From NCBI RefSeq assembly GCF_006345805.1, contig NC_043016.1, forward strand, positions 27,962,001 to 28,026,000: 64,000 nt of DNA, read 5' to 3'. The position numbers and the translations under genes are program-made. The DNA is from Octopus sinensis (taxonomy: Eukaryota). Shown piece by piece: positions 9,893 to 60,226 of the stretch. The first letter of the stretch is position 1. Each line of letters begins with the position of its first letter. The notes under the pieces are model-generated. The model ran no database searches. It was given only the letters and a program-made list of their open reading frames with translations, and had not been told where the DNA came from.

Positions 9893-9933
<41 letters not shown>

Positions 9934-9988
9934 ATATATATATATTGTATGTGTGTTTGCTTGAACTTGTGTATATTTTATTCCTTAG

Positions 9989-10152: not shown

Positions 10153-10346
10153 GTAAGTATAGTCTTGGTTTTGCTTTTTTTCTCTTTTCCTCTGTTTATT
10201 CTTTACAAATATCAATCTGCTGGACTTGTGACTCTAATTTTAATCCATTAGAACATAGAATAACTTTTCAGATTTGTTAGTTTCAATAGCAATTTTAAAA
10301 ATATATGTATAGTAATATTATGATGGCTCATTTGTGTAGTATATGT

Positions 10347-10598
10347 CAGTGTTTCCCAAAGTGATATTGCCCCCTGGGGGTGGTGAAAAGTTCCAAAAGG
10401 GTGTTGATGAAAAGTGGGGTGATAATAGGGTAGCGATTCATGTAAAAACAAAATAATGGGTTCATTAGGTTAAGTTTAATTTGTTAAATACAGTTGCTTT
10501 GAATTTGCTTCTGAACGAAGTTTGATTGGGATGGAGGTACTAGGAATATGGCCTGGGTGTCAAGGGGGTGGCAGCCTGAAAGTGTTTAGGAACCACTA
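10347..10598. mobile_element. hAT (Charlie-like) MITE
   Basis: TIRs CAGTGTTTCCCAAA / TTTAGGAACCACTA; perfect 8-bp TSD GTATATGT (10339-10346 and 10599-10606). Confidence 0.85.
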
Positions 10599-10717
10599 GT
10601 ATATGTGATATAAACAATTTTACATAACTGTGTTTAAAGAAAACTTAGAATTTAAACTTCTAAAGTGAAATTAAATGACGTATTAAATACCTTATTATTA
10701 TATGCATAAGTTTTATG

Positions 10718-11590: not shown

Positions 11591-11599
11591 AGGTTTATT

Positions 11600-12562: not shown

Positions 12563-13391
12563 CAGTCTGCTTTGATGCAAGTCAGATGTGAGTTTACTTG
12601 GATAGAAATAATGCATCTATTAATAAGAGTTGAAATTATTGCATGCTGGATGTCACAGCTCGTTCATAGTCAGCCTATGGGGGTGGGGTCATAGGCTGTT
12701 GTGTTTCAGGCTGGTTTATTGCTAAATATTTCTGGACTTTTAACTTCATTTGAGCATTATATTATATGGTAAGGTAACTGTCATTTTTACATCAGTTAAT
12801 TGAATCTGTTTTGATTTAAAAACAATGTTATGTGCAGTGTACCTTTTACATCAAGTTTAATTTGATAATTAGTATGTTTACACTTGTTGCTCCAGAATGT
12901 AATCAATTGTAATTTCATTTTCTCTAATTTATAGCATCTTATTTATTTATAGCATTGTGGAATTAATTAGTGTATAATTCTTTTGATGTATTTTATCTAT
13001 TGGTAATTAATCCTTAACCAACTTTGTATTCTGTTTATTTAAATTTTACTCATTAGCAATACTTAAGTGTTGGTTTATCAATTGATGAAATCTCATGGCA
13101 GTGTAAGACATGTACAATCCTTTGTTATTCTCTAGGTTCTACTTAATCAAGATTTATATTAGAATATTGAAATACATCTTAAATTTGTATGGTTATTATA
13201 GCAGTTTATTTGAGATGATTATCAACAAAGTATCATGACTTATTCTTATGTGTGTCTTGATTTAATATTTAATTTTAACAAGTGATACTCCATGTGGTTG
13301 ACTCAAATATCAGATATATATTCTTCTGTATGAATATAACATATGTCTAAAATATATAGGACTCTTACATATTTATTTGTTTCATTTACAG

Positions 13392-13596
13392 CTTAATGGA
13401 AATTCTAGAAATTGCAGAGGACATGCAGATTGATATACCTAAAATTTGGCAATATCTTGGTGAGCTCATTAGTCCTGTAATACAAGCAGGCGGTATGCCT
13501 TTGAGTTTTTTGAAAATGGCATGTGAACCTTTGAAGAAATCAAATTTAGGTGGTATATTACCATCAGAAATATTAAAGGATCTTTGTAAGACGATG
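13392..13596 (+). CDS. EIF4G: eIF4G MA3 exon: LMEILEIAEDMQIDIPKIWQYLGELI...LCKTM
   Basis: cag/gtaagt; AEDMxIDIPxIWxYLxEL motif. Confidence 0.96.
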
Positions 13597-14498
13597 GTAA
13601 GTTTAAATCTCACTAAATATTTATTGCTATTTGTACATTGTTGTATCTGATAAGACAGTGTCTTTTCTTAGGCGTAGCAGTTACATTATTAACAATTTAA
13701 AGAAGTGGAATGAAGAGTGTACAGTTGTATACAGCAATCGCAAATGTTAACATGACATTTGCAGTGGATGTCACTGTAGTTAGGTTTTTTTTTGTTTTTT
13801 TCCCCCCTCTCCAATTATGCAATAACTATAAAGATTTTCTGAACATATAAAACTGCAGTATATCTTATTTAAATGCTTATGAAGGTTTATAGAATATGCA
13901 ATAAAGATCTTCTAAATTAGAATTTTGAGAGATAGCGAGGATTATGCTGAGGAGTTAGGAGAGAGATTATTAAAGGAAAGGAAAGATATCTATTTTTAGC
14001 TACTAATTTTCTTTGTTTTGTCTTTAACAACCTTTATACTGAATTGTTAGGCATGGTAATACACAGTCAATGGTATGACCTTCATTAGTCATAATTCATT
14101 TTGTAAATCTGGTATCATTCATGAAATTGTTTCAGGTACTGCAACCAATATAAAAAAATAGTTCAATGCTATTTTCCTAATTTGTGTTACCTGATACATG
14201 TTTATATATTTATACTTCTAAAACTCTTTTAGCGTATAAACTGACCATATATGGTCCAAAGTGTTCTATCTGTTTTGTTTAAACTGGCCAAATCTGGCTT
14301 CTTGTCTGTACCCAACAATGCCTCATTCTAACTCTGAGATTTCAATGATGTAATTGCTTCAGTCAAATAAATGTGAATAAATATGTATTGCATTTGACTG
14401 TGCTCTGAATGCTAAAGAATTACTAACTTATAAAGTACATGTAAGATTTGAACTTTCCAGATTTTAAAATGTTTGTGAATTTGTATTTTACTTTTTAG

Positions 14499-14594
14499 GG
14501 ACAAGATAAAGCAGCAGAATTATGGCAATCATCAAAATTACAATGGTCTGATTTCTTAGATGAGAAAGATATTGATTCATTTATAAAAGAGAAG
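14499..14594 (+). CDS. EIF4G: eIF4G exon: GQDKAAELWQSSKLQWSDFLDEKDIDSFIKEK
   Basis: tag/gtaatt; LW..S.L.W.DFL pattern. Confidence 0.92.
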
Positions 14595-14718
14595 GTAATT
14601 AATATTCATGAGCAATTAGTATTTTTCTAGATATTTCTAATTTCTTCTCGTGAAGGTTTTATCTTAAAAATTACTTGGCATTTCATCACTGACATTGTGA
14701 AATTGAATTGTCTTTCAG

Positions 14719-14856
14719 AAACTTGAATATACACTCGGGGGAAGTGTTTCCAAACCAGTGCCAGGTTCCTTGACAATAGCCAACATTCAATCAAAGTTAA
14801 CTGAATTAATATCTAAATCTGAACAGTCTGAGAATGAGATAACTGCCTGGATAGAG
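14719..14856 (+). CDS. EIF4G: eIF4G exon (start of W2): KLEYTL...ENEITAWIE
   Basis: cag/gtaata; KLEYTL and I..WIE motifs. Confidence 0.9.
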
Positions 14857-17217
14857 GTAATATTTTACTGTTTTGCTCTTGATCACTCTCCTGCTTCTCT
14901 TGTCTTTTTTGTAACTCCATTCAATGTATCATATTTGCTGGAATATTTTTTAAAATGTATTTTTAAAAATATTACCCTGCACTCAGTGTGGCTGTACTAT
15001 GGATAGAAGACCAGCTATTGTAGCCAGATAAGTAGAATCCTGCTACGGGAAAATAAATCTTAATTATAGCAAAAAAAAATATTGGCAACAAAGAAATATA
15101 TCATAGTCTGTTAGCACAGACACAAAGAAAAATTGCTAACCGTATCCCGGCTGTTATGTAGGGGAGTCACATCTCATTAAACCTCCTTCCGCAGTATACA
15201 TAACACACCGGGTATGTGCCTTACACTATGTAATGACTATACCTTTAGGGAACCCTTTTAATTATCTAGATGGAAATTCTCTGGGAAACATGAAAGAGTT
15301 ACTAAACTTTCATCTGCCTGCCAGCTGTTTGTAATGGGTGAATAACAATACAAGTGTTGCTTGAACTTGATGTTTGATCATGATTACATAAAACATTACA
15401 GCCAGAAGTACAAGTTTTACTTCTTGTATGACAATTTTCTTGAGCCAAATTCAAATATATAGTCAATTGAAAAGATGAATTACTCCAGCATGGCCACAGT
15501 CTAATGACTGAAACAGATAAATATAAATTTATGATTGTATACTTCCTTCCTGTATACTCTGTCAATATTGTATTTGCATGCACTTTTAAAACATTCAATA
15601 AGTATACGGTGAAACATACTAAATTGTTGCATCCTATTCAAATTTCTTTGTAAAATAGATATGTCTGATACACTGGCAAATAGTGTAATCATAAAAGTTG
15701 GGGGATCATACACACAAACATCGGCTTCTTTCAGTTTATGTCTACCAAATTCACTCACGAGGCTTTGGTTGGACCGAGTCTATAGTAGAAAACACTCTTT
15801 AAAGTACAGTTGAATTTCATGTAGCCACCTGTTGGTAACATTTCTCCCCCACCCATTTTGTAGGAGGTATTACCCATTTTTCTGGGCTCTTTTCCCAGCT
15901 TCACGGTTTTTGAAATTTGCACTAGTTTTTGTATGAGAAAAAGGAAGTGGGGCTTGTTTGTAGAGAAAGTGTTAAGCATGCCTTGGAAAAAGTGGAGGGG
16001 TGAGCCCCCACCCACCCACCCACTAAAAGACATGCATGATTGTGAAAGAAGGCAAGTACGTACTGGGGGTGGGGTGAGGAAGACCTAACAGTTGATCATT
16101 CTAGAATTCCCAGAATAAGAACATAAACACCTGAAAGACTTTCCTTCTATTCATTTCTTTTAACAATGCGGAAGAGGGATAGACACTCAGTAAAAAAGCT
16201 AGAAAAGATCAATTGTAATTTAAGTCTAATTGTCATTTTAAATGACAGGCTTTCCTTTCTGTCTCTATTGCTTCCCTCTTTTTCTGTAAGGTTAAGAGAG
16301 TGAAGGTGCATGTCTCAGTGGTTAGGGGTATTTGGTCCATGATCATAAAGTCATGAGTATGATTCCCTGTGGCATACTGTGTTTTTGAGCAAGGTACTCT
16401 ACCTAAGACAAAATAATTATTTTGTCATGTATTCGTCCTCGTCTCCTGCTCAGTTTGATAATAGCTTGCACATCTGTGTTTACTTGGGGGCTTGGCCTCC
16501 AGATCTCTGCGACACATAATGATCCTAATGACTAAAACAATTTTTCTGCCCTGTATAGGATCATTTTTCATTTCTCTTCCAACCACCTGAAGGTTTTTAT
16601 CTTTCTCCAGTCCTCTCAGCTGGCCAAAATGAGTTGTAGCTGTAATTGAAAGGGGCCAGTCTTGTCATATTGTGTGAGACTGAATCTCCTTGAGAATGAT
16701 ATGCATGTCTGTGGAGTACTCAGCCACTTGTGAGTTAATTTTATCCTCGTGTGGTACTGAAAAGTGAGAGTGACATCAAATATTTGTTGTAGTTATTTAA
16801 CAATGTGTCTGTGTCTACTGTCTCTCACTTTTTCTCTTTCACTTCCTCTATGTCCCTCCTCTCTTCTGCTTGTAATTAAACAATACATTTATCTACTAGC
16901 AGTGATGTGATAAACATTTAAAAACACAACATGAATACCATCACCACTCACTCTATGTCCTCCTCTCTCGCTTTGTCACTCACTTTGAAGTGTGACACAC
17001 ACGCCAGGTACATACAAAAACAACAAATTGGCATCTTAATATTATTGATTTTGTAATTGAACTATATTTTTGGATCTGATTTGTTTTGCTATCCTGATAC
17101 ACTTTTGTTATTAACCAGTCTGCAGCTCTTCTCACACTTCTCAGCTGTTGAATACATTGTATTTGATTCATCTTTTTTGTATGCTGTACTATATGTAATA
17201 TATTGTACTTTATTTAG

Positions 17218-17299
17218 GCTTATGTCTCAGAGCAACAGAAGAAAGATCCTTTGGTAATCCGTGCTATTATGACTGCAGTATGTTCAAGTTGTCTCTCAG
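17218..17299 (+). CDS. EIF4G: eIF4G W2 exon: AYVSEQQKKDPLVIRAIMTAVCSSCLS
   Basis: tag/gtttgt; matches FVRALMTAVC. Confidence 0.9.
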
Positions 17300-17307
17300 G
17301 TTTGTTA

Positions 17308-17340
<33 letters not shown>

Positions 17341-17730
17341 ATCGCATCAAGTGGCTTCAACCACTGGCAGTTATGAAACTGGATCATATTGATTCCACTG
17401 ACATCTACATTGATGTGGGTTATTATTTTGGAATTTTTCCCACTTGACTACATTCTGTGTCACTGAAATTTATATGTACATTTTTCTTTTCATTTTAAAA
17501 GTTAAAGTGTTTGCATTCCCTAAATTTACTAAATCAATGCAATGAGGTCAAAATATTTTGTGAAAGATTTGTGAACACAAACATTGCCGAGTATATGAAC
17601 AGTTAAATTTTGTTGCTTAGCAAGTAGAATGTTAAACACTTTCTGGTTCATTCTGTTCATTAATTACATTGTAGAACCTGGTGTTGTCTTCGATGCAGTT
17701 CTAAAGGAATTATTGATTTCCATTTTGTAG

Positions 17731-17868
17731 GTCCAAATTTCATGCCTCAAGAACAAAAGTTGCGTGGTTATTCCAGTTTACTTAAAAAGTATTTGAAAAA
17801 TAAAGACGACGAGGTGCAGGCCCTATATGCGCTCCAGTTATTGGATACCAAACTGGAGCACCCACCAA
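17731..17868 (+). CDS. EIF4G: eIF4G W2 exon: ...LLKKYLKNKDDEVQALYALQLLDTKLEHPP
   Basis: tag/gtaggt; LLxKYL..E.QALYALQ..LEHPP. Confidence 0.95.
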
Positions 17869-18891
17869 GTAGGTTATTTCATTTTAATTTCTATTGCTTT
17901 TTTTTTCCTCTCTGTATTTTAACAACCTGCATAGAACACCATGCATTAGAAGTAGTCAAATAGTAGCCCCCTGTAGGCAGTAAAGAAATGGTGAGACAGG
18001 CTTTGTGACAACTGATATTAATGATAATTACTCGTACAATTGTTCTGGTCACCAGCCATTCATAGTAACTAGTCTGTGTGTGTACGCATACTTACCTGTA
18101 CACTACTGATTAAAGCCTTATTAATATAAACAATTATACATGATTGACATTAGAATTTACATTCGTTTAGGAAGTTATTTTACTTCAGAAGTCGAAGATG
18201 TTTGTGAATTTATTAGACAGTGATTGTGTGAGGAATTTAGAGAACCACTGAGCATATTCCAAATGTGAACAAGATAATTTGTTTCAAGCTGATGAGGCGA
18301 GTGGTGATTGAAGAAACAAGTGTATGATTAGTTGGAGGTGTAGGGCATGGGCAAGTTAAGTAACAACAGTAAATGTTGGGGTAGGGTTTGAATGATGGAT
18401 GTAGAGAGTAGATAAGGGGTAGGAGCAACAACTGATTGGGAGATGTATGAGATGCAGAAAAGGAGTAAGGGAGAACAGTAGGATAATGGTTCTGTTGATG
18501 GGACAGACGAGAAATATTTGATTGTGTAGGCTGGAGATGAGTATTAATAGGGTATTACTAAATTCCAAAAATTCACATATCCATTCTTGTGAACAGTTTC
18601 ACGAAGTCAGTTCAGCAAAATTTGTCACTTGTTCCAGTTAATAAGTGGAACAAATATCAGTAAACAATTTAGTATTAAAACAACAACTTGTAAATAAAAG
18701 AGAACTAGTTACTTTCTATTTAATTAGATAAAAATGAATTTGGTTCTGAAGAAATACATTTTAAATATGTGTTAGCAGTTTTAAATATCAGAAATAAAAA
18801 TACATTGCATTGTATAATGTTTTCATATTGTCTATTAGAAAAGTGTAATATGATGGCTTTACTGATCTTTCTTTTTCAATTTTTTTTACAG

Positions 18892-28964: not shown

Positions 28965-29740
28965 TATCTGGACTATTGCCATAGCAACAAAACTAAAGCA
29001 TGTAGAGTAAAACACCCAAGTTTTACTGTTCTAGCTTACTTCCACTATTTATAGCAGTGCTTGGAAGGAAGATGTGTAACATGTGATCATTGCATTGACC
29101 ATGACAAAGAAAGTTGAGCAGAGAATCCAGATCACATTTTGCCAAAAGTCTGGCGATACCTGCTCAGAGACCTATGCAAAGTTTCCAAAAAGCTTTCATC
29201 GTTCACAATCAAGGAAATCTTGTGCAACTGAAACCCAAGTGTCTTCTTGATCAGCTGAAAGCAGTTTTGGCAGACATGCATCTCATACCCAAATCTTCAG
29301 TGATAACTAATCTGCACATCCTCTGATAACTCACGGGTGGGGATTTGACGATTTCCTGTCACAGTTGCACACACATTTGCAATGTTTTTCTCAGTTCTGG
29401 ATCTCTGAGAACGTTCATTAATATCGGCATTTTTGTGGCCATCTTGGAAATGTCTGAACCACTCGTACACTTGTATGCGGTTCATACACCCCTCTTCATA
29501 CACTTTTTGCAACTTTGCATAGGCCTCTGAGCAGGTATCACCATGACAAGCTTCTCTGTCATGGTTAATGCAATGATCACATGCTACACACCTTCCTTCC
29601 AAGCACTGCTGTAAACAGAAGTGAGCAAAGAACGTTAAAACATAGTGCACATGCACAGCAGAGTTCAAGAACAATCTTTGCTGAGCAACTTTACTCTGCT
29701 TGCTTTAGCTTTGTTACTATGGCAACAGCCTGGACACTTA
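28965..29740 (-). mobile_element. Rearranged mariner remnant with inverted duplication of its 5' part
   Basis: Minus ORF with QVYEWFRHFQDG..RSRTEKNIANV (mariner HTH); 28965-29192 is an inverted copy of 29503-29737. Confidence 0.75.
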
Positions 29741-29764: not shown

Positions 29765-30310
29765 ACCAATCCTATGACTGGCACCTGGCAGTTGCCAGGA
29801 CCGCTGGACTGACTCCTGTGCAGGTGGCAAGTGAAGAAATACCATTTCGACCCTGTGCTTGAGGAGATCCATTGAGTCAAGTACACCAACATCAAAATCA
29901 ATGGAAACTGCAGTTGTGATCCCTGTGCTGGTGGCAAGTAAAAAGCACCATCTGAACGTGGCCGATGCCAGCGCCACCTAGACTGGCTTCCATGCCAGTG
30001 GCATGTAAAAAGCACCATCCAAATCGTGGCCAATGCCAGCACCGCCTTGACTGGCTTCCATGCCGATGGCACATAATATGCACCAATCCGATCGTGGCCG
30101 TTGCCAGTCTCGCCTGGCACCTGTACTGGTGGCACATAGAAAGCACCCACTACACTCACGGAGTGGTTGGCGTTAGGAAGGGCATCCAGCTGTAGAAACT
30201 CTGCCAGATCAGACTGGAGCCTGGTCCAGCCTTCTGGCTTCCCAGATCCCTGGTCGAAATGTCCAACCCAGGCTAGCATGGAGAACGGACATTAAATGAT
30301 GATGATGATA
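29765..30310 (+). mobile_element. Young RTE 3'UTR copy ending in (TGA)n then (TA)n
   Basis: Highly similar, inverted, to 42216-42550; same tail family as 27.7k, 43.8k, 61.4k and 62.3k. Confidence 0.8.
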
Positions 30311-30547
30311 TATATATATATATATATATATAGCAATAATAATTCTCTAAAAGAGATATAGACAGTAACTGCTCGATAACATAAGGGACTAAAGCCATCT
30401 GAATATGGCTAGGGACAGGGCAGGGTGGTGGGGTGTTACTGTTGCATTTAGCCCCAGGCGAACATCGATGTCACCAGATAGGCCCGACACCGTCACGGTG
30501 TCCTTTAACCTGCAAAGGGAGGTAATTCCCCGATGAAGCGGAAACCA

Positions 30548-30787: not shown

Positions 30788-31421
30788 TGGTTTCCGCTTC
30801 ATCGGGGAATTACCTCCCTTTGCAGGTTAAAGGACACCGTGACGGTGTCGGGCCTATCTGGTGACGTCGATGTTCGCCTGGGGCTAAATGCAACAGTAAC
30901 ACCCCCACCACCCTGCCCTGTCCCTAGCCATATTCAGATGGCTTTAGTCCCTTATGTTATATATATATATACGTACACACACCACCTGCGTTTATACTAT
31001 GTGTCTGTACATTTAAGAAGATATATCTTGAATACAAAGCATAACTTCCAAGTTAGTTATATTTTACATACATTCAACTTGTGTAAATAAAGAAATGTTT
31101 TTATTTTAAGCAATTAATTTTATAGCAAGATGTTTTTCCAACAGCCACCTTTGGAAATGTTAAGAACCTGTAAGGTTGGGTTACTTTGGATGCCGGGTTA
31201 TGTACCTTACTTAAGATCCCAGTTTCAGTTGGCCTCTATCTCAACATCACAGTTACAACTCCTTTGATTTGGGCATCACAACAACGTGAATGTCTCCACA
31301 AGGGGAAGAACTTAAGCTTTATTTTTATGGTGATGAAGGATCTTTCAACAGACAACAATATGCAGATGGACTGAGGTAATGGAAAATAAAGTGTACTAGA
31401 TGTAAAACAAGGAAACACTTA

Positions 31422-31708
31422 CTCTTTTACTTGTTTCAGTCATTTGACTGCGGCCATGCTGGAGCACCGCCTTTAGTCGAGCAACTCGACCCCGGGACTT
31501 ATTCTTTTTGTAAGCTCAGTACTTATTCTATCGGTCTCTTTTTGCCGAACCGCTAAGTGACGGGGACGTAAACACACCAGTATTGGTTGTCAAGCAATGC
31601 AAGGAGAACAAACACAGACACACATACATATATATATATACATATATACGACAGGCTTCTTTCAGTTTCCGTCTACCAAATCCACTCACAAGGCATTGGT
31701 CGGCCCGA
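31422..31708 (-). mobile_element. SINE family A, 5'-truncated
   Basis: Reverse complement of the 26144/56387 body. Confidence 0.85.
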
Positions 31709-42105: not shown

Positions 42106-42215
42106 CAGATAGTTGCCCAAGGTGCCACGCAGTGGGACTGAACCCGAAACCATGTGGTTTGGAAGCAAGCTTCTTACCACACAGCCACTCATGCGCCTAT
42201 ATATATATATATATA

Positions 42216-42550
42216 TCATCATCATCATCATCGTTTAACGTCCGTTCTCCATACTAGCATGGGTTGGACGGTTCGACCGGGGATCTGGGAAGCCAGAAGG
42301 CTGCACCAGGCTCCAGTCTTATCTGGCAATGTTTCTACAGCTGGATGCCCTTCCTAACGCCAACCACTCCGTAAGTGTAGTGGGTGCTTTTTACGTGCCA
42401 CCTGCACAGGTGCCAGGCGAGGCTGGCAACGGCCACAATCGGATTGGTGTATTTTATGTGCCACCGGCACGGAAGCCAGTCGAGGCGGTGCTGGCATCGG
42501 CCACGAGTCGGATAGTGCTTTTTACGTACCACCAGACCAGGGATCCTGGC
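42216..42550 (-). mobile_element. Young RTE 3'UTR copy with (CAT)n tail
   Basis: Inverted near-copy of 29.9-30.3k. Confidence 0.8.
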
Positions 42551-46439: not shown

Positions 46440-47340
46440 TAAGCATATTTCATGCGTGGTTTCTAAGTCACAAATGGGATGAAGCATGGTTGAAGAAAGA
46501 TTAAGGCAGAATAAAGGGTTATATTATCTAGATAAGAGTGGATGTGTAGAAGGAAGAGTGTGAAAGACAGAACTGAACCCTGTTGCAATTTGATGGGAAC
46601 TTACTGATCCAAGAGATAGGTGATGGGTAGAGCCTGTAGGCAGGACATTTTGATAAAAGATTTATATATATCAGCCATGGTCAAATCATTTGCAGATGTC
46701 TAGGTCAACAATTTTGCTTTCATTCACATTCTCTAAAGTGAGTATAGACTGATGAGGGGCATAAGAGAGTGGGTCATCAGTGGATTTGGCTCTGTAGAAA
46801 CAGTACTGTTGGTAACTGAGGATAGACAGAAGTATTCAAGGATATGGATGTCTCCAACATCTGCAATAAGATGATAGCTGACTGAATTAGAAGGTTACCT
46901 TTCTTTGGAATGGTTCACACTTAAATATTTCCAGATATGTCCCTGTAGAGAGTGAGAGATTAAAGATTTAATGAATGTAGGAACAGGTTGCAGGGTAGTG
47001 TTTGAGTGTTATGGAAAGACTATTGTCAGAGCCTGTGGTTTTGCTTATTTCTGCCTCTGGAGTGTGTGTGTGTGTAAGGCTGAAAAGTAGAAAGGGGGTA
47101 GATTTGGAGGAGGTTGGTGAAGGATGAATTGTATGGAATTGAATGCAAAGATTGTAGCTTTCTCCATGAAGGTACTGTTTATAGACCTATTTTTATCGAG
47201 AAATGGAGGTAAAGAGAACTCTGTAATGTTGGTGAAAATTCTCTTGGCAAGGGACCTGAAAAATCAGTTGCAGTTTGGAAGGTGGGAAAACTCCGACAGT
47301 TCATTTCTTGTAGCAAGTGATGTTTCAGTATTATACCTTA
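46440..47340 (-). mobile_element. Very degenerate CR1/L2-type RT remnant
   Basis: Minus frames resemble PSNYRPISL and LDISKAFD (seen as DLDICK*FDH). Confidence 0.45.
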
Positions 47341-47425
47341 ATGTTTTCAAAAGCTCAGCAATGGTTTGTAGCTTTGATCCTTTTGTTATTTTAAAGTTTA
47401 ATTTCTACCATATTTTTACTTTCAG

Positions 47426-47488
47426 ATAAACCAATATTTTCTATTGATATTCATCCAGATGGGTCTCGATTTGCCACAGGTGGTCAAG
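47426..47488 (+). CDS. HIRA: HIRA exon 2: DKPIFSIDIHPDGSRFATGGQG
   Basis: cag/gttagt; near-identical to HIRA KPIFSVDIHPDGTKFATGGQG. Confidence 0.97.
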
Positions 47489-48398
47489 GTTAGTGTTCTT
47501 TATTATTCCATGGTCACTAAGTCTTTTGCTTTGGCTCTTTAGTACATACATCTGTAAACTTTAGTAATATATATGTATATATATATTGATATACAACTAT
47601 AAACAAGAGCAAAAGAGAAAAAATTTCTATGCCAGTATGTTGAGAATAGACGTTAAATCATCAATCACCACATTACAATATATATTCGCTAAGAATACAT
47701 GTGCTGAAATTGGGGAAGGCAAGCTAACAGAATTCTGTTAGCTTGCCTTCCTTGTCGTGGCATTTTAAATGTTAACTTTATCAAGGCTAATTTATTAAAG
47801 CTAATATATAAATATAGTATATATAAGCACAAAACAGTATGTATGTGTAAAAATGTATGGATGAAGTCTTTAAGGTTTAAGATTCAAATCAAAAAGGTGA
47901 AATAATATGGTTTACTAGTTGAAATGTAGAATTAGTTCCGCTGATCGTGAGAATCAAATGTTGATCGCTTCGCTAAAAACTGACTATTGTAAGTGCAGGT
48001 GCTGTGGGTTATTTCCTTGGGTGTTTAAATAAAATATATTAGTTATATGTAGTAGATATAAGAATCCCTTCTAGGGGCCGTATTATTGATGTTTTGCAAC
48101 AATCTAAGTATGTTACGAGGTTTCCAGACATGAGTTTTACTCACATGTCGAGTTTCATCCTAATCGATAAAACAATGTAGGAGGAGTTAGCTAACAACAC
48201 AAGCAAACACACCCACAGACAGAATTTCTGTAGTAGATTTATGTATCTATATATTTTCTATTTTCTCTCCTGTTTATTTCTGTGTTCCTTTCAGTCAAAG
48301 AGTGTAGGCTTGTAACGTAAAAAACTTTCTCACTTCCCGAGCGTGAAACTAATACATCTGTTTGTTGTTTTTTTGTCTTTTATTTTTTTTGTATATTC

Positions 48399-48435
<37 letters not shown>

Positions 48436-48493
48436 GTAATGAGATAAAAAAATCAAGGCTGTGTAGATATTAGAATATTTATAGATATATAAG

Positions 48494-48545
48494 GTCTTAC
48501 AGCTGTTTCCAGGATATTTATTAATTATATCCCTTCATCGGAGAT
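48494..48545 (-). ncRNA. Hammerhead mirror copy (CCGAUGA core, weakened stem I)
   Basis: Minus strand reads ATCT-CCGATGA-AGGGATAT..ATATCCTG-GAAA-CAGCTG-TA-AGAC. Confidence 0.55.
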
Positions 48546-49037
48546 GGTGTGAGAGGATGGTTAAGTATTAGTTAATTTAGATAGGATACAAAATTGAGAG
48601 TGAGGTGGAGGAAAGAAAATAGATGTGAGATATGTAAGGATATTGAATTTGTAGATCCATTTTTTAGGCAGAATGGTATATATGTAAGATTCCAATACCT
48701 TATGAGAAAAATCCAACAGTATTTAAAATTGTTCATTCCAAGTATAGAGTTTATACACAATGTAAGATTCCAATACCTTAAATACTGTTGGATCTTACTC
48801 ATATGATATTGGAATCTTACATTGTGTATAAACTCTATACTTGGAATGAACAATTTTAAATACTGTTGGATTTTTCTCATAAGGTATTGGAATCTTGCAT
48901 ATATACCATTCTGCCTAAAAAAATGAATCTACAAATTCAATATCCCTACATATCTCACATCTATTTTCTTTCCTCCACCTTACTCTCTATTTTGTATCCT
49001 ATCTAAATTAACTATTACTTAACCATCCTTTCACACC

Positions 49038-49085
49038 GTCTCTGATGAAGGGATATAATAAATATCCTGGAAACAGCTGTAAGAC
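49038..49085 (+). ncRNA. Minimal type I hammerhead ribozyme, sense to HIRA pre-mRNA (GUA, predicted cut after 49081)
   Basis: Stem I GTCT/AGAC, canonical CTGATGA, stem II GGGATAT/ATATCCT, GAAA, palindromic stem III ACAGCTGT. Confidence 0.78.
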
Positions 49086-49329
49086 ATTCTATCTATAAAT
49101 GTTCTAATATCTACACAGCCTTGGCTTTTTATCTCATTACGAAAAAACTTCTTATATACACACGCTGACATATGACCAATGTTGAACCCCTTATTCACAA
49201 AATCACTGAACCTGGAACTTAATTATGGTCTGTCTATAGCACTTATTCAGCATTACCTGACACCTTTGGGTCTCAATGACACCATTACCTCTTATAACCT
49301 CAACTATATATATATATATATATTGTTTC

Positions 49330-50975
49330 AGCTCAGAGCCGCAGCCCTGCTGATGCACTGCCCTTTTTGCTACACTGTTATTACTGAGAGACTCCTCCAA
49401 TATGTCGAACCTGGTGAATAATGGAGTTTGATATAGCTACTCTCATTTGCACCTCTTGCCTTGATGTAGGTTCATCTGCGATTATCGACAGGAAGCGGTC
49501 CAGCTTTGATATAAAAACGCCTACATCTACTTTGTGCAGGTTCCTCAGGCTCTTTAGGAGAATATTAAAAAGCTGTGAGCTCATGAAACCCAGGCTGTTG
49601 CAGTAACTGGTTCTAAAATGAGATATCGTTGCTGGGATCTTTGGCACTATGCAGTGTCGTCCTGTTCTGGCATTGGTGTAGCTTTCAATGCCAAAATTTT
49701 GCATGGTTCCTTCCAGGATCTTCCAGATGTATATTACTGCATACCTCTCCCGCCTTCTCTCCAGGGAGTAGAGTTTTGGCTGTTTCAGCCTTTCCCAGTG
49801 GCTGAGCAGTTGCAAAGGGACAATCTTCTTTGTGAATCTTCTCTGGATTGCTTCAAGGTCTGCTGTTAATTTCACACTGTTGGGTGACCATAGCTGTGAG
49901 CAGTAATCCAGGTGGCTGAGGACAAATGTCCTCCGGAGGACCATCATGGTTTCCTTATCTCTGGTTCTGAATGTTCTCAGGATCCATCCAGCCAGTTGTC
50001 TGCACTTTGTCGCCATTAGTGCACTTGGAAAGAGGTATCATCACTCATATCAATACCCAGGTCCATCAATGATTTAGGCTCTGGGATTGAAATTCCCTGT
50101 GGATCAGTGTACCCTGTAAGTTTCATATTAAGTTTTGGACACAGGTAGTGCAGGGCTAGGAATTTTTCAGCATTAAACTGCATATTATTATCCTCAGCCC
50201 ATCTGTAAATTGAGTCCAACTCCTGCTGCAGATGTGCAACATTGCTGGGGTTCTGTATTTACTGTGAGACTTTCGTATTGTCTGCGTAGCTTGCAAGGGC
50301 GGCTATCCGGGTTCTTGAGGGCGTATCTGAGAGGGCCACTATAAAATGCAGTGGTCCCAAGAGAGTGCCTTGTGGAACACCGCTCACTATTTGTGTTTTC
50401 ATAGAGGTGGCTCCATTAGCCACTACTGCCTAACTACTATCTTTCAAAAAGTCAGGTAACCACTCTCCAAGTTTTCCAGCTATGCTGAGATCACGCAGTT
50501 TGTGGCATATCATACCATGATTCACCTTGTCAAAAGCTTTTGCAAAATTAAGGTATATTACGTCCACATTTATGTTGATTGAGTAACTGCCTCAACACCC
50601 AGTCATAATGTTGTAAGAGCTGGGTCAGGCAGCTCCTACCTGGTCGAAAACCATGCTGGGTATCACTCAGCCTTTCCCACTAGCTGAGCAGTTGCAAAGA
50701 GAAGTTATTTTCTTCAAGGAATGCGATTAGTTTCCCTGTGACTATCCGTTCCATGACTTTGCTGATGTGTGAAGTTAGAGAGATAGGCCTATAGTTTTTG
50801 GCATCTGCTCTGCTTCCCCCTTTATGGATTGGGCATATTATTCCCTCCTTTAGCTTGCTTGGCAGTCTGCCATTTGCAAGAAAGCTCTGGAAGAGAATCT
50901 GGAGGGGTTTTGCTAGGGCATGCTTACATGATTTGAGGAGGATTGCTGGGAAACCATCAGGACCAGCAGTTGAGT
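49330..50975 (-). mobile_element. CR1-clade LINE ORF2 (RT and 3' part), decayed
   Basis: AGPDGFPAILLK, NYRPISLTSHISKVMERI, QHGFRPGRSCLTQL, GVPQGTLLGPL, SYADNTK, LDYCSQLWSP, YSLERRRER. Confidence 0.92.
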
Positions 50976-50984
50976 TATATATAT

Positions 50985-51290
50985 ACATAGAGGAATACAA
51001 AAAAAATGGGACAAGAGTGCAAAACATCCAGACAAATGATACAAAAAAGGGACAAGAAAAAACAAAGACGAGTTGTTCAGAGTTTTCTTTCTTCAGTCAA
51101 GTTCCAGATTATTGTTGCAATTTTGGCTTGTTATACTTGAGATTGCTCCAATCTGGCCAACCCCAAGGAAAAACTAAGCTAAGAGCACTAGATTCCTTGG
51201 AAGAAAGCAGCGAATGTATACAAAAACAAGGATGGGAAAAAAAAAAACGGGGAAATGGTATACAAATGCAAATAACAGGACATTAACAAC
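50985..51290 (-). repeat. Penelope-like terminal repeat inserted at a TA run, truncating the CR1
   Basis: 51080-51181 has an inverted homolog at 52003-52103; family assignment is inference. Confidence 0.45.
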
Positions 51291-51895
51291 AGGGATGAAA
51301 GTCATCCTCTACGGAATTTGAACTCAGAACGTAAAGATGGACAAAATGCCAATAAATATTTTGTCCGGGTTACTAACTATTCTACTGTCTTGCTACCTCC
51401 TCTTGTCCTATTAATTCTTTCTACTCTAGGCACAAGACCTGAAATTAGGGTTGGGGCAGAGGCTAGTTTTTTGCATTGATCCCAATGCTGAACTGATACT
51501 TATTTCACCAACCCTAAAAAGATGAAAGACAAAATTGACTTCGGGTGAATCCGAAATCAGAACGTAATGAGGCTAAGTATTTTGTTAGACGTGCTAACTC
51601 GTGCCAGCTTGTTTTGCCCTACTAACTCTTTCTACTATAGACACAAGGCTTGAAATTTGGGGAGGATGTGCAGAGGATAGTTGATTACGTTGATCCCAGT
51701 GCTCAACTGGTACTTATTTCATCGACCCAGAAAGGACAAAAAGCAAAGCCGACATTGGTGGAATCTAAACTCAGAACATAAAAACATAAAGTCGCTAAGT
51801 ATTCTGCCAACTTACTTCCTTCTCTTGTCCTATTAATTCTTTCTATTTTAGGCACAAGGCCTAAAATTAGGAAGGGAAAAGGCTAGTCTTTCGAT
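51291..51895 (-). mobile_element. Head-to-tail array of 3-4 SINE family B copies (period about 205 bp)
   Basis: Repeated GAATTTGAACTCAGAACG-like B-box and TTCTTTCTAC..GGCACAAG tail. Confidence 0.7.
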
Positions 51896-52199
51896 TAAGG
51901 ACGAATTAAATTAAGCTGATGTGTATGGAAGTGAAGCCTTACAGCAAAGACATAAGAAATGACAGGTATAGGAGAAATATAGATGTGCACAGATGGTAGT
52001 TGTAGCTTAGTTTTTCCTTGGGCTGGCCAGATTGGAGCAGTCTTGAATATAACCAGCCAAAATTGCAAAGATAATCTGGAACTCGACTGAGGAAACAAAG
52101 CTCCGAGATAGATAAACATGCCCACACTACTTTTTTCTGCTGTTACAGCAGAATTTTGTTGTTTCCCCCTTGTTTCAAGGGGGAAACTGCTAAAAACAT

Positions 52200-55100
52200 G
52201 AATTTGTCACCAATTTTTTGAAACTATGTTTCATGGCCTGTTTTCGGTCGATGTGGGATTGGAAAATATAATAAACCTCAAAATTTTGCTTCAAGGCATA
52301 GAAAGGAGTATGGGGGAGGAGAGCGGTAAAGCTATAGAGGCGTTACATGTGCTTGCTACAAAGGCAGACGATAAAATGTCTAACAAGGCTATACAGGTGG
52401 AAAAGTCTAAAGTTAATTTTGCAAGTGCAGTAACTCACTCCAGTAAAAATTTTCACATAAATAAGGACGAATTTTAAAAAATGTCAAGGTTTATTGCAAA
52501 AGGAAGGTGAAAATGTGAAGTTGCTCCCTTTGATTGAATTAATCAACACGACAGAGAGAAAAACACTGTTATACAAGACTTACCACGTCAAAAATTAAAA
52601 AATCGACTTTGTGACAAGGGAAGCCATAGAGAAATGCTTGAGGCCGATATGGTAAGAAACAAGTTATATAGCAAGGGATAGTCGCTTTAGTACTGTGGAG
52701 GTGCGTTTCCCTAGCGAAGAAAAAGCCAGGGAACATTTGACAACGACATTGAAGTCCGAAGAGGTAGTTCTCCTGCTGACTTACTTAGGAAGGAGAACTT
52801 CAAAAGTCAGGGTCGGCCTTGCTGGTAGCCGTTATCCTCATGGGCAGAGAGGAAAAAAATTACCATTCTGCGGGCGAAGAGATACCATCACATGAACTGG
52901 GTTGGACAGGCCTTAGAGCTGGTGATTCAAGCAAACCCCATCAATTTGGAAGAAATGCTCAGCTCAATTTTAATTGGGGAAGATACCAGCCTGATGTTGG
53001 TAGTCAAGGGGCAAAAGCCGAGGTGTTATAAATGTGGCGAGAAAGGCCACATAAGGTTGAATTGCAAGAAAGAAAAAGTCAAAGAAAACGCAGCAGAAAA
53101 GGCAAGCACGCCACCAAAGGAAACAATCACACTGCTAGAAATAGTATGTGTTGAGTGCACAAAATACTGAAGAGCAGCCGACAATGCAAGAAAACAACAA
53201 CAACAACAACCAGGCGTGGGTCACCGTGGAACCATCAAAGTGAAGATGGAATCGGAAAGATCCCCCTTCTTCAGATACACAGGACTATTCACAGAGAGAC
53301 AAGCACGCACGCCCACACCCACAAATACAGCTGCAAACACACATACACTGAAAAAAAGCACACACACGCACACCTCCACAATTGCCTAATAAAAAAAAGA
53401 TAAACAACTTCACGGCGATAAACAAAAATAACAAACTCCTTTTAATGAAGTCGGTGAAAAAATATATTGCAGCGGAATTAAACAGTACAATTCCTGCAAA
53501 CGTCGAGTTTTATATCATCGACAGCACAGACTGTTTTGAACTAAATATATTGCGGAGGACATCGGCCCACTACAGATGAACTTTTCAAGCCATTTGTACA
53601 GGCAATTCTCTAAAAAAATGACCTTGCAAACCACAACATCTACAGACAGAAAATTGGAGGGTGAAACTACACCCCCTCTCCCATTAAAACAGTAAATTTT
53701 AAACATACAATTTATTTTTCACGTACTCGTTTAAACTTGGTTGTTTAAATGTATGTGGCCTGGGGTCAGTTTGGAAGCAAGGCTGCCTCCTTGATGACCA
53801 TGTTTCATATCATTTGGACGTAGTTGTAATTACTGAATCCAGACTGAGTGGGCTGCAGTCTTTTTCACCCCTCCTAAACAGCTACAAGAGATATGTTTCT
53901 CCCTGTCGGCCAGGAGGGGGTCGCAGTGCTAGTCAGGAAAGACCTGGATTTAGAGATTAGAACTGTCTTTATAGATCTGGTCGTTTTGGATGTGACGCAC
54001 AGAAGTGGTAAAGGTTTTAGGCTGGTTGTTGTCATCTATGTTCCCTGTGAAGGAAGAGCTGGACAGTACGACTACTTCAGAAGCCTAGAGAATTCTCTAG
54101 GCATGTCAAACATGTTAGTATTGCTTGGCGACTTTAACACAATCTGCTATGTTGGCTTGAGACAGAATAGGAGGGGATACCCTTGCCTCAACGATCTGCT
54201 AAGTTGTTTCCAGTTGGCAGATCGATTCCAACTGGACCACCCAGACGTTCCAGCATGGACCTGGGCAAAAAAAAATGGGTCGTCCAGATCTTATAGAGAT
54301 AGAATCATTACTAGAAGGAAAGAGGTCATTATTGGACTGCGAAGCCTACAGAAACCAGATTAGACAATTAGTAATGAGGGCATTTAGTGGATCCATTATC
54401 AACAACAAATGGTGGTACACCCTCAAAAGAGCCATCAAATTTGAGCTGATTAGGTTTAGCAAAAAATTAGCTAGTACTAGAAACAAAGTAGAAAAGGGAC
54501 TAGTTAAGGCAGTAGATGAGGCAATGAGGTCAGGCGGTGCATCCAATGTGTTAGCAGTGAGGTTGGCACTCAACCAACATGTCAAAGGTAAACCCGGAGG
54601 GTGCATTGTCAGGGCTAAGATCTGTGCATTGAGACAGGAAGGGATCAACGCGGCAAGATGGGCTGAGTGGTAGAGAGCCAGTGTGGCAACAACTCAACCA
54701 TTCGATCTTTGATGGACCCACATGGTTGATCAGTAAACGAACCCAAGGAGATTTTCACGATCATTTCGCCCAGCTATTCAGGAAGAGTGGTGGACTGGTG
54801 CGCAGGGAGAAGCTCACAGAGTTCATGGCCGGTTCACGAGCTCTATGGTAGCATGCCAGAATTGTTTGGGTACCTACTTGCATGCGTGTACACCAACTGG
54901 CAGCAGAATGGGAGAATTCTCAAGTCTGTGAGCTGAGGAGTCGTGGTGCAGTTAAGAAAGGACCCAAACAAGGGGGATTTAATTGATAATTTTTGGCTCA
55001 TCACTTTGCTTAATGCAGAGTTGAAGATTTTGGCCAAGGTTTAGCAAAAAGGTTGTCATGGGTGGACTTGTTGGCGAGACACAAACATGCACCATCCTTG

Positions 55101-55433
55101 GCAGGACTGTCCACGACAATCTCCACTTTCTACACTAGGCCTTAGAAAGGGTAAATACGATTCCTGGCAAGAGTGGGGCTATGGTCCATGTAGACCGATC
55201 GAAAGCATTTGGTTAGGGTAGACCATTAGTATCTGGCGGTGGTCCTTGCAGTGGCTGGCTTCGGCCTGACCTTCAGTGGATGGATCAACACTTTATACAG
55301 CGACATTGAATTGCTATTTCGGGCGAATAGTTTCTTTTTGGAGCTGTTCTGCATCAAACGATTGGTACGTCAAGGGTGCCCTCTGTCTCGGCTTCTCTAC
55401 ATTTTGGCCCTCAAGCCAATGCTGAGGCTGTTA
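52200..55433 (+). mobile_element. Tx1/L1-clade LINE, 3'-truncated and decayed (ORF1 zinc knuckle, ORF2 APE and RT)
   Basis: CYKCGEKGHIRLNC (53024-53065, CX2CX4HX4C); LLGDFNT, WTW, SRSYRDRI; ITLLNAELKILAK; RQGCPLS.LLYILAL. Confidence 0.85.
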
Positions 55434-55673
55434 TAAAATGAATGAATACAGAGTTATATTTTATAAAATGAATTGTCAACAGTCTTCCTAAGATTTTTAC
55501 AAAGTTGTTCCATTTATTTTTATCTGATATTAACTAAAATCCAATTGACCAATACTGCACCACAGGATTTTCTGGTGATGTAATGTATGTTTGCTTTATT
55601 TACCATTTGGATGTAGGAAATAACCTGTAAATTCCTCAGAGTTTATCTTTTTATCACCGATTTCTCACTATAG

Positions 55674-55784
55674 GTGATGATTGCGGTAAAGTTGTTATTT
55701 GGAACATGGCACCAGTTAGAGATGAAATATCTGAAAAAAATGATGCTGTACCAAAAATATTATGTCAAATGGATAATCACTTAG
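55674..55784 (+). CDS. HIRA: HIRA exon 3: GDDCGKVVIWNMAPVRDE...PKILCQMDNHL
   Basis: tag/gtgagt; GKVVIWNM and LCQMDNHL conserved. Confidence 0.97.
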   Translation: MMIAVKLLFGTWHQLEMKYLKKMMLYQKYYVKWIIT

Positions 55785-56386
55785 GTGAGTACAGTATTGT
55801 TTTCAACAAGTACACCTACCTATAACCCACTTTTGTACCTCTATTGCTATTCTCTTTCATATTCATTTTGTACTTTGAGGGTATGGCTTCACCATATCTC
55901 CCCCCCCCCCAAGTCGTGTGTTCACTTCATCAGAAAGCCACCTGTTCCTCTCCCTCTATCATACTTACATATCCTTTAATACTATGTCCCACTCAGTTGA
56001 AGGGTCTTATGAGTATTTGATGATCTAGCAGTGCTGGTTCCATGAGAAAAGCAACCAGGACCCACTGAAGTGCTTGGTGTTAGGAAAGGCATCTGGCTGT
56101 AGAAACCATGCTAGAGTAGACATTGAAGCTCAGCGCAGCACTCTGGCTCATTATTTCATGTTGAATCATCCACCCTATGTTAACATGGTAAAAGGGACAT
56201 TAAATGACGATGATATTATTGACAGACTTGTTTTTTTAGAAGTTATTAATTTCTATTGTAGATACAACACCACACATATTTAGGCAGGATGCGTTGATTT
56301 AAATGGTTCTCATATTTGACCGGATCTCATTTTCTAGATTTTGGTGAGATTTGAATTCCCAGTATGTGTATGTATATATATATATA

Positions 56387-56547
56387 GGCGCAGGAGTGGC
56401 TGTGTGGTAAGTAGCTTGCTAACCAACCACATGGTTCCGGGTTCAGTCCCACTGCGTGGCATCTTGGGCAAGTGTCTTCTGCTATAGCCCCAGGCCGACC
56501 AATGCCTTGTGAGTGGATTTGGTAGACGGAAGCCTGTCGTATATATG

Positions 56548-56578
<31 letters not shown>

Positions 56579-56785
56579 ATGTGTTTGTGTGTCTGTGTTT
56601 GTCCCCCTAGCATTGCTTGACAACCGATGCTGGTGTGTTTACGTCTCCGTCACTTAGCGGTTTGGCAAAAGAGGCCGATAGAATAAGTACTGGGCTTACA
56701 AAGAATAAGTCCCGGGGTCGATTTGCTCAACTAAAAGGCGGTGCTCCAGCATGGCCGCAGTCAAATGACTGAAACAAGTAAAAGA

Positions 56786-56786
<1 letters not shown>
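56387..56786 (+). mobile_element. SINE family A, full length, inserted in (TA)n
   Basis: A/B boxes TGGCTGTGTGG / GGTTCAGTCCC; TA runs on both sides. Confidence 0.9.
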
Positions 56787-56832
<46 letters not shown>

Positions 56833-58331: not shown

Positions 58332-59560
58332 GTATGTCTGATGTTTTAGATTTTTAAAAATCTAACTAAATTACTGCCTTTCTATAACTTGAAAAATGAA
58401 GCCTTTAGTCATAACATCTTCAAGAAGTAATGAAAATATATGTTGTATCAACTACTACTACTAATTCTGCTGCTGCTGCTGCTGATGATGATGATGACGA
58501 CGACAAGAACAAAAAGCATGGTACTGTAGGCTGCAGGCATTCCAACAAAACTGAAGTTAATAATAATAATAATAATAATAATACTTGGCTTCCTCTCATA
58601 TCTATTTAGCACTGTCCTCTGTTTTATGTTGAAATGTTTTCGATTGCTATTAGCATTGTTGCTCCACTATTTTGGTGGGATATCCTAACAACTGGTATAA
58701 ACTCTTTTAATAGTAAAATTTTCCCTGAAGTGACCAGCATGGTAACTGGGCTCTTATTTTTATTCAAGATCTGCTGACAACCATACCTGACTAGCTATAT
58801 CACCATCATGCTCATTTAATGTCCATGTTCCATGCTGACATGGGTAGGATGATTTGACAGGAGCTGGTAAGCCAGAAGACTACACCCAACTTCACTGTCT
58901 GTTTGGGCATGGTTTCTATGGCAAGATGCCCTTCCTAATATATAAGCCAGTAGAGTGGAATCATTTAAAAAGTTTTAAAAAATGATGCAAAGCACATTGT
59001 GACCAGCAATGTATAACATCTGATAGGCTGATTAAGTGATATACATGTATACACACACACTTTTACCATTTTGAAAATCAACATGTTTTCAACGGCTTTT
59101 CTTATAAGATTGACAAAGGAAATTGAGTGTAACCCTAGGCGTTAAGAGCTGCTGCTGAGAATTAAGGTGGTCTACACCAAAATTCGAAATCGTATAAGGC
59201 TATATACGCTAGGGACTTAACTCTCTTCGTCAGTCATTAAGTATAGTGCTTTGGTGACTTTGGAGTTAATTTAACTCTTATTTTAGCATAAACGGTGCTA
59301 GTCTGCACCCACCATTACTTTTGTGACCCCTATTAATTTTACCTTTAGGTTCTAATTGCTAATAAGCCACCCTTTTAATTTGTTGTTTACATGCAAATAT
59401 ATGTGTATCTAGTAACATTTATTGATGTTAATGTCAGCTAATGTTATAGAATGTATCCTGAGTATTTAAAATAGATGGCTAAAAATGAAAACACACTTTT
59501 CTACAATAAAGTTAGTAGCTATGCTAATGATTCTTTTCTCTTTGTGTGTATGTGTATATA

Positions 59561-59905
59561 CTCTCTTTACTTGTTTCAGTCATTTGACTGCAGCCATGCT
59601 GGAGCACCGCCTTTAATCGAACAACTCGACCCCGGGACTTATTCTTTTGTAAGCCCAGTACTTATTCTATCGGTCTCTTTTGCCGAACCGCTAAGTAACG
59701 GGGACATATACACACCAGCATCGGTTGTCAAGCAATGTGAGGGAGACAAACACAGACACACATGCATAGATATATATATACAACGGGCTTCTTTTCAGTT
59801 TCCGTCTACCAAATCCACTCACAAGGCTTTGGTCGGCCCGAGGCTATAGTAGAAGACACTTGCCCAAGGTGCCATACAGTAGGACTGAACCCGGAACCAT
59901 GTGGT
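59561..59905 (-). mobile_element. SINE family A
   Basis: About 90% reverse complement of 56387-56786. Confidence 0.88.
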
Positions 59906-60226
59906 TGGTAAACAATTATTATCATCATCAAAGTGGCAAGCTAGCAGATCTGTTTGCACATCAGACAAAATGCTTAATGGTATTAATTATTCCTACTCTT
60001 TAGATTCCAGTTCAGATACTGCTGTGGTCAATTTTGCCATTCATCTTTTCAGGGTTGATAGAATAAGTACCAGTTAAGCACTGGGGTTGATGTAATCAAC
60101 TTACCCCCCCCACACACACACACACTAAAATCGCTGGTCTTGCATCAAAATTTGAAAGAATTATGATTATCATCATCAACAGCAGCACATACAGGTTCTT
60201 AATTTTGATTGTTTTATAATTTATAG

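Follow-up and report, generated by a model that had tools for sequence, protein, structure and literature searches.

The hammerhead ribozymes of metazoan Penelope-like elements (PLEs) are minimal in form. Helix I comprises 4–5 bp and helix II 6–8 bp, one nucleotide is left unpaired between A9 and position 10.1, and positions 15.2–16.2 are palindromic together with loop 3, two copies jointly building helix III; the G10.1-C11.1 pair is highly conserved (PMC4209133). These motifs number in the thousands and are mostly solitary, with some occurring as 'dual min-HHRs ~100-700 bp apart on opposite strands'; single motifs were without detectable cleavage and dimers were weak (PMC4209133). The type I hammerheads of invertebrates have a helix III that consists of a 2-bp stem and a palindromic tetraloop. 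In an axolotl family of hammerheads, cleavage persists despite a U.U mismatch at the base of helix II (PMC7229834, for both).

The insertions left by PLEs are strongly 5'-truncated and are often accompanied by an adjacent, inverted copy, itself 5'-truncated, which results in inverted repeats; the hammerhead is found close to the 3' end of the element, and microsatellite targets, including (TA)n, are preferred (PMC8557442). In vitro, the purified protein of the lizard PLE Poseidon_Ac cuts and extends both strands of AT-rich DNA, with reverse transcription starting at a fixed internal site approximately 85–92 nt 3' of the hammerhead cut (PMC11167929). The Poseidon hammerhead cleaves only with the protein of the element, and among RNA-seq reads there were none with an end at the cut site (PMC11167929). 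PLEs have been recently active in Octopus vulgaris, with 31 families (PMC13282606). Here, a motif that resembles the PLE hammerheads is described from O. sinensis, within a stretch of 64,000 nucleotides that is referred to throughout as the window. A full-text literature search returned no published description of an octopus hammerhead.

The hammerhead motif and its carrier in HIRA intron 2

The exons of HIRA were located by tblastn, using the N-terminus of human HIRA as the query, and were spliced by hand. This identified seven collinear exons on the plus strand of the window, and the spliced N-terminus of 193 residues was 100% identical to 'protein HIRA [Octopus sinensis]'. From 29248 to 64000, the window matched CM016878.1 of assembly GCA_006345805.1 without a difference. 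A preliminary description of this DNA had placed a hammerhead with a canonical core, in sense orientation, within the second intron; direct reading of the sequence and exon mapping confirmed that 49038–49085 is a type I hammerhead motif with all core bases intact, in sense within HIRA intron 2. Coordinates of the principal features are given in Table 1.

Table 1. Position, strand and basis of the features in and around the inserted element (window coordinates)
Feature	Position	Strand	Basis
HIRA exon 2	47426–47488	+	tblastn, splicing
HIRA intron 2 (8185 bp), host of the element	47489–55673	+	exon mapping
(TA)16 microsatellite, abutting the left end of the element	48403–48434	.	Tandem Repeats Finder and sequence
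Left arm, opposite orientation	48435–48780	-	repeat search, arm alignment
Degenerate hammerhead copy	48494–48545	-	direct reading, arm comparison
Right arm, longer 5'-truncated copy (364 bp)	48778–49141	+	repeats, arm alignment, ends
Sense type I hammerhead motif	49038–49085	+	direct reading, descriptor scans, folding
HIRA exon 3	55674–55784	+	tblastn, splicing

Read directly from the plus strand, the motif is GTCT/CTGATGA/A/GGGATAT-AATAA-ATATCCT/G/GAA/ACAGCTGT/A/AGAC. Helix I is formed by 4 bp (GTCT at 49038–49041 with AGAC at 49082–49085), and leads into the C3–A9 core, CTGATGA (CUGAUGA in RNA; 49042–49048), and an unpaired A49049. Helix II has 7 bp, one of them G.U (GGGATAT at 49050–49056 with ATATCCT at 49062–49068), and is closed by the loop AATAA; an extra G49069 lies 3' of it, followed by GAA (G12–A14; 49070–49072). 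Helix III (49073–49080) is ACAGCTGT, or ACAGCUGU in RNA, a perfect palindrome of 8 nt that begins with A15.1 and ends with U16.1; in a monomer, it provides a 2-bp stem and the palindromic tetraloop AGCU. H17 is A49081 (i.e., not G), the cleavable GUA triplet is intact, and the predicted scissile bond lies between 49081 and 49082. The conserved hammerhead core (C3 U4 G5 A6 N7 G8 A9 / G12 A13 A14 / A15.1-U16.1 / H17) is complete in this copy.

The sole departure next to the core was found at the base of helix II, where the G10.1-C11.1 pair is absent. This position can be read in two ways, either as A49049.G49069 at 10.1/11.1, or as a bulged A followed by G49050.U49068 and the extra G49069; alignment of the arms showed the same state in both. 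The preliminary description had given the first of these readings as the only flaw in the core, which stands, the second being equivalent. Its predicted cut position agrees with direct reading, and the stem III palindrome that it had recognised proved to be perfect over 8 nt and of the kind that requires a second copy.

A second copy does exist, on the opposite strand, and is degenerate. Its reverse complement reads ATCT CCGATGA ... AGAC, with U4 replaced by C (CCGAUGA) and an A/C mismatch in helix I, as reported previously, and with a 4-nt insertion in loop 2 in addition. Owing to the change at U4, the conserved core is incomplete, and HIRA pre-mRNA carries this copy only as the antisense of a hammerhead.

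Both copies belong to an inverted repeat of 707 bp (48435–49141), the sense motif sitting in one of its arms. The repeat consists of two head-to-head copies of a single unit that have been 5'-truncated differently. In the right arm, the order is an internal 78-bp repeat (V-W-V), approximately 140 nt, the hammerhead and a 60-nt 3' end that terminates in ...TTTTTATCTCATTACG (also written ...CTCATTACG). The left arm is truncated 24 nt further at its 5' end. The arms meet through a 3-nt overlap, TTA (48778–48780), such that the centre of the palindrome is without unrelated spacer and the right arm extends 24 nt deeper into the V-W-V repeat. At the outer ends, both arms terminate at the same 3' base, 60 nt past the predicted cut site. 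They are 95.3% identical over 337 aligned bases (a divergence of 4.7%), with a few indels besides.

The two arms, of ~345 bp with identical termini, have no coding capacity, and a spurious ORF of 102 aa running across the palindrome had no match in the protein database. No target-site duplication was discernible at the ends of the element, TATATATA / CG...CG / AAAAAACT; the adjoining (TA)16 is likely to have been an AT-rich insertion target. No tRNA-like head, of the kind that marks a tRNA-derived SINE, was found in the element. Nor was a head-to-tail tandem array found, there being just two copies, head-to-head. An assembly artefact, in the form of a palindromic long-read chimera, was ruled out because the arms differ by ~5% plus indels, and because the O. 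vulgaris assembly, which is independent, shows the same structure. Approximately 105 bp to the left of the element, ACGTAAAAAACTTTCT (48314–48330) resembles ACGAAAAAACTTCTT (49137–49153), which spans the right end of the element and its flank; this likeness may have remained from a larger insertion unit or a target duplication, or may be coincidental in A-rich sequence.

A simple descriptor of our own design matched a single site in the window, where 0.003 were expected per dinucleotide-preserving shuffle. A strict descriptor, requiring a motif as good as or better than that observed (helix I of at least 4, helix II of at least 7 and a palindromic helix III), had no match in 1500 shuffles. A relaxed descriptor for minimal hammerheads produced 0.0127 chance matches per 64-kb window of shuffled sequence; scaled by the extra constraints, this rate becomes approximately 2.5e-4 per window or, by extrapolation, about ten in a genome of 2.7 Gb. 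Chance would thus hardly produce such a motif in one window, but could well do so somewhere in a whole genome; given some ten equally good chance matches per genome, the motif alone is no proof of origin and its context must carry part of the argument. The Rfam models Hammerhead_1, _3, _II, HH9 and HH10 found no match in the window at the gathering threshold, nor in segments of 801 nt and 76 nt at E ≤ 10, in searches run without a known PLE hammerhead as control.

LINE fragments are present on both strands of the intron as well. Those of the minus strand, at 49305–51027 (ORFs at 49381–50016 and 50680–51027), derive from a reverse transcriptase and match RVT_1 weakly; the LINE repeat starts at 49327, after a (TA)9.5 tract (49305–49323) and approximately 165 bp from the hammerhead element, and has a second copy, 88.6% identical, at L001:46647-47136. 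An exact-sequence look-up of this neighbouring LINE ORF returned no record. On the plus strand, a zf-CCHC ORF followed by an Exo_endo_phos (AP endonuclease) ORF (52892–54673) represents the 5' part of another LINE. Given this LINE content, most of the 8.2-kb intron is lineage-specific transposon DNA.

Upstream of HIRA, exons of an eIF4G-family gene occur on the plus strand (3702–17963), running off the left end of the window; its ORF at 3702–3998 matches Pfam MIF4G, while those at 13396–13650 and 17742–17963 resemble, by eye, pieces of MA3 and W2 domains. Between this gene and HIRA, a minus-strand ORF (29297–29674) matches the HTH domain of Mos1-type transposases (HTH_48) and marks a mariner-like remnant. 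Interspersed repeats of ~290–400 bp were seen at 29998–30332, 31420–31708, 42198–42532, 56371–56798 and 59555–59915, and recur in the window and in the HIRA loci at 85–95% identity; these probably represent octopus SINE families that have no relation to the hammerhead element.

Distribution among octopods and age

The HIRA loci of three other octopods were compared: O. vulgaris (L003), O. bimaculoides (L004, 87 kb) and Argonauta hians (L002). Only O. vulgaris had the element in the orthologous intron, with two differences, neither of them in the hammerhead. However, O. sinensis and O. vulgaris are 98.9% identical over the entire intron, and the match of the element is therefore uninformative on constraint. 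The element was absent from the 87-kb locus of O. bimaculoides, in which only ~300 bp beside each of the exons bordering intron 2 could be aligned; since the flanks of the element are themselves lineage-specific, its absence was seen there, rather than a precise empty site. It was also absent from the locus of A. hians, where intron 2 is only ~620 bp long. Neither a second copy of the unit nor a further minimal hammerhead turned up when ~415 kb of octopod DNA was searched. Scans for exact patterns (a 24-mer common to both arms and a gapped hammerhead pattern) returned 0 matches in viral and metagenome contigs, which probably contain no cephalopod DNA.

The length of HIRA intron 2 was ~620 bp in Argonauta (L002:18941-19778), ~5–6 kb in O. 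bimaculoides and 8185 bp in O. sinensis, which suggests that the intron grew by transposon insertion within Octopus. The region around exon 2 (window 47300–47638) matched the O. bimaculoides locus twice, at L004:13210-13547 and L004:14096-14391 (88% and 93%), approximately 890 bp apart; either the locus has a duplication that takes in exon 2, or the assembly has duplicated the region.

A JC value of 0.09 is quoted as ~25 My, and the split between O. vulgaris and O. bimaculoides is placed at 13–33 My (PMC13282606). At the quoted rate, the divergence of 4.7% between the arms suggests that the insertion would be ~7 My old and so younger than that split. From the divergence and the distribution together, we infer that the element was probably inserted after the lineage of O. 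bimaculoides had split off, and before O. sinensis and O. vulgaris separated.

Predicted folding in HIRA RNA

When folded as RNA, the whole element was predicted to form a near-perfect hairpin of ~345 bp (-521.9 kcal/mol, z = -53.6), in which the antisense arm, being transcribed first, pairs with the entire sense arm. The preliminary description had expected the upstream arm to be antisense and to sequester the motif, and the predicted hairpin agrees with this; it had also pointed to the lack of a tandem partner and, indeed, no sense partner copy was found. The only Rfam matches came from the centre of the palindrome (48687–48849) and lay, on both strands, below the gathering threshold; they were to families of plant miRNA precursors (MIR7994 at 57.6 bits, with a threshold of 100; MIR8742 at 47.1, with 130). 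These were read as generic long-hairpin matches, and flag the element as a look-alike of hairpin-RNA precursors for the small-RNA machinery.

In isolation, the minimum free energy (MFE) structure of the 48-mer kept helices I and II, while C3-U4-G5 were paired with CAG of helix III (96% probability). Because of this pairing, the active fold (-5.0 kcal/mol, against -10.3 for the MFE) would account for a fraction of only ~1e-4 of the monomer at equilibrium. Two copies cofolded to a double hammerhead with a helix III of 8 bp (MFE -25.9 kcal/mol), gaining ~6 kcal/mol over two monomers. A gain of just this size implies a Kd of tens of micromolar, and a dimer in trans would need RNA at roughly that concentration. 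Within a single pre-mRNA there is one sense copy only, because the other arm is present as antisense.

On these predictions, significant self-cleavage of HIRA pre-mRNA is unlikely, and the motif is presumably without cleavage activity in HIRA. The preliminary description had proposed that the transcript could cleave itself after 49081; meaningful cleavage was not supported, the motif being part of an inserted, lineage-specific inverted repeat, its active monomer fold being so rare, its G10.1-C11.1 pair missing and published hammerheads of its architecture inactive as single motifs and weak as dimers, or dependent on the element's protein. Its sense orientation carries no meaning either, since any inverted pair puts one copy in sense. 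Heavy A-to-I RNA editing is typical of coleoids. The hairpin would be a good substrate for ADAR, or for Dicer. The RNA is more probably lost when the intron is removed; before that, its long duplex may be edited or diced.

Origin of the element and comparison with known systems

The motif was interpreted as the hammerhead at the 3' terminus of a PLE-type retroelement, or of a non-autonomous repeat that PLEs had mobilised, now carried as a passenger in HIRA (with a probability of about 0.6). The match to the published PLE class extends to a helix I of 4 bp, a helix II of 7 bp and the unpaired A49049 after A9; ACAGCUGU, as a perfect palindrome, would allow helix III to form between molecules. 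The layout would fit the terminal location of hammerheads in PLEs: the copies, inverted and truncated, lie at a (TA)n tract and carry the motif close to their 3' ends. Two-strand priming from a fixed start predicts identical 3' ends facing outwards, different 5' truncations and a (TA)n neighbour, and the 707-bp repeat is therefore read as a double insertion, dead on arrival, of either a PLE or a non-autonomous unit that PLEs mobilised. Against this reading stand the missing G10.1-C11.1 pair, the lack of a target-site duplication, of a further copy in ~415 kb and of an Rfam match; furthermore, a DNA transposon with long TIRs would likewise give identical ends on both arms. A tblastn search with the Poseidon_Ac protein, covering the window and octopod loci of ~450 kb, found no ORF for a PLE reverse transcriptase or GIY-YIG domain.

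If the element did originate in this way, HIRA intron 2 would have received it at an AT-rich (TA)n site some 7 My ago, when O. bimaculoides had split off and O. sinensis and O. vulgaris still shared an ancestor; two heavily 5'-truncated copies would have been left in head-to-head arrangement. Both strands of the cut target would have primed reverse transcription from one internal start on the element RNA, such that the arms share a 3' end 60 nt past the cut, break off at different 5' points and were joined in the centre, presumably by microhomology. Twin priming of the LINE type was rejected as the mechanism, since it joins different parts of the template and both arms here represent the same part. 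The hammerhead of the parent element would have multimeric transcripts as its substrate, where two ACAGCUGU palindromes can form an 8-bp helix III, and its cleavage was possibly aided by the element's own protein. In HIRA, the insertion would be a passenger, its sense and antisense copies zipping into the ~345-bp hairpin and leaving with the intron.

An unlikely, though still credible, alternative is that the palindrome is a DNA transposon of the foldback or MITE type, or a local inverted duplication of some other non-autonomous repeat that bears a hammerhead (retrozyme or SINE-like); the hammerhead would then still be element-derived, and still irrelevant to HIRA. Non-coding arms of ~345 bp with identical termini are what a foldback element or MITE would present, no PLE ORF lies nearby, and the window has its mariner-like HTH ORF; Tc1-mariner and other TIR elements, as well as MITEs, are present in Octopus (PMC13282606). 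Yet the flanks, TATATATA and AAAAAACT, share no target-site duplication, and the centre consists of the 24 nt by which one arm extends further into the internal 78-bp repeat, a structure that two separate 5' truncations would be expected to leave. Such termini are not known to be usual in the common TIR superfamilies, either. A retrozyme-like unit is suggested by the length of ~345 bp and the low GC content, which resemble those of metazoan retrozyme monomers (PMC7229834), but the tandem direct arrangement that defines retrozymes is lacking, and there is no tRNA-like head. It is improbable that the resemblance to a hammerhead arose by chance in an AT-rich repeat, with no ribozyme ancestry. The relaxed descriptor's rate of 0.0127 per window, or roughly ten per genome when scaled, leaves room for this, as do the lack of an Rfam match, of G10.1-C11.1 and of any other family member; on the other hand, none of the 1500 shuffles was as good as the observed motif, and several features that the search did not impose fit the published class, these being the base after A9, the 7-bp helix II, the 8-nt palindrome, the 60 nt to the 3' end of a truncated inverted unit and the (TA)n target.

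Highly improbable is the remaining possibility, that the sense copy has been kept intact as a conditionally active ribozyme, which would regulate HIRA by cleaving its pre-mRNA after 49081, in intron 2, and aborting the transcript; it would be restrained by the antisense arm and released, for example, when the hairpin is opened or remodelled (by helicases or A-to-I editing), or by a PLE protein. If true, this would represent a lineage-specific, transposon-derived switch on a histone chaperone in O. vulgaris and O. sinensis. The core and the GUA triplet are intact in the sense copy while the copy on the antisense strand has decayed, the axolotl family shows that a mismatch at the base of helix II can be compatible with cleavage (PMC7229834), and conserved intronic hammerheads occur in amniotes (as cited in PMC7229834). 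However, the arms, which differ by ~5%, have 2–3 differences in these 48 nt, and one intact copy therefore needs no selection. The element is absent from the HIRA loci of O. bimaculoides and Argonauta, a hairpin of -522 kcal/mol outcompetes a ribozyme fold of -5 kcal/mol, and there is no sense partner for dimerisation. Moreover, such an architecture is without activity as a monomer (PMC4209133), and even an active PLE leaves no RNA-seq ends at the cut site (PMC11167929).

Read as a PLE or PLE-mobilised insertion, the locus adds one more example of the weak, dimer-dependent hammerheads that Penelope-like and related retroelements have spread through animal genomes. Its head-to-head anatomy, with the same 3' end and different 5' ends, would be a tidy genomic footprint of the two-strand priming that has been shown in vitro for the lizard PLE. 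The motif would carry much greater weight if the sense copy truly cleaved HIRA pre-mRNA, but no finding here points there.

Among described systems, the intronic hammerheads HH9 and HH10 of amniotes (De la Pena & Garcia-Robles 2010, as presented in PMC7229834) are alike in that they, too, occur within introns of protein-coding genes and are oriented in sense. By that account they are ultraconserved across orders and form stable monomers, whereas the octopus motif is confined to two sister species, lies in a transposon hairpin and is unmatched by the Rfam model of either. The non-LTR retrozymes and satellite hammerheads of metazoans (newts, schistosomes, mussels and corals; PMC7229834; bioRxiv 10.64898/2026.07.22.740005) share the type I topology, a weak palindromic helix III and a low-GC repeat unit of ~300–350 bp, and their cleavage is dimer-dependent. 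However, they form head-to-tail tandem repeats that yield circular RNAs, where the octopus has a single head-to-head pair, and the helices I and II and the loops of the octopus motif are without the canonical 6-bp/4-bp arrangement and its tertiary contacts. Retrozymes are also reported to be depleted from introns (bioRxiv 10.64898/2026.07.22.740005), while the octopus motif is intronic.

The minimal hammerheads of PLEs (Cervera & de la Pena 2014, PMC4209133; Lunse, Weinberg & Breaker 2017, as reported in PMC6765202) come closer, being alike in helix lengths, the unpaired nucleotide, the palindrome and the pairing of copies on opposite strands. They differ in that the octopus motif has a G.U and an extra G (or A.G) in place of G10.1-C11.1, that its helix III is the 2-bp stem and tetraloop canonical for invertebrates rather than the bare ACGU minimum, and that it comes without a demonstrated PLE ORF or consensus family. 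Compared with the complex PLE insertions described by Craig et al. 2021 (PMC8557442) and the priming of Poseidon_Ac (PMC11167929), the octopus copies are just ~345 bp long, with no full-length unit or pLTR-ORF-pLTR body, and no 'tail' of 30–40 bp could be assigned. These systems and the octopus element are nevertheless alike in their adjacent, inverted and 5'-truncated copies at an AT-rich or (TA)n target, in a hammerhead close to the 3' end, and in a 3' end that is fixed tens of nucleotides past the cut.
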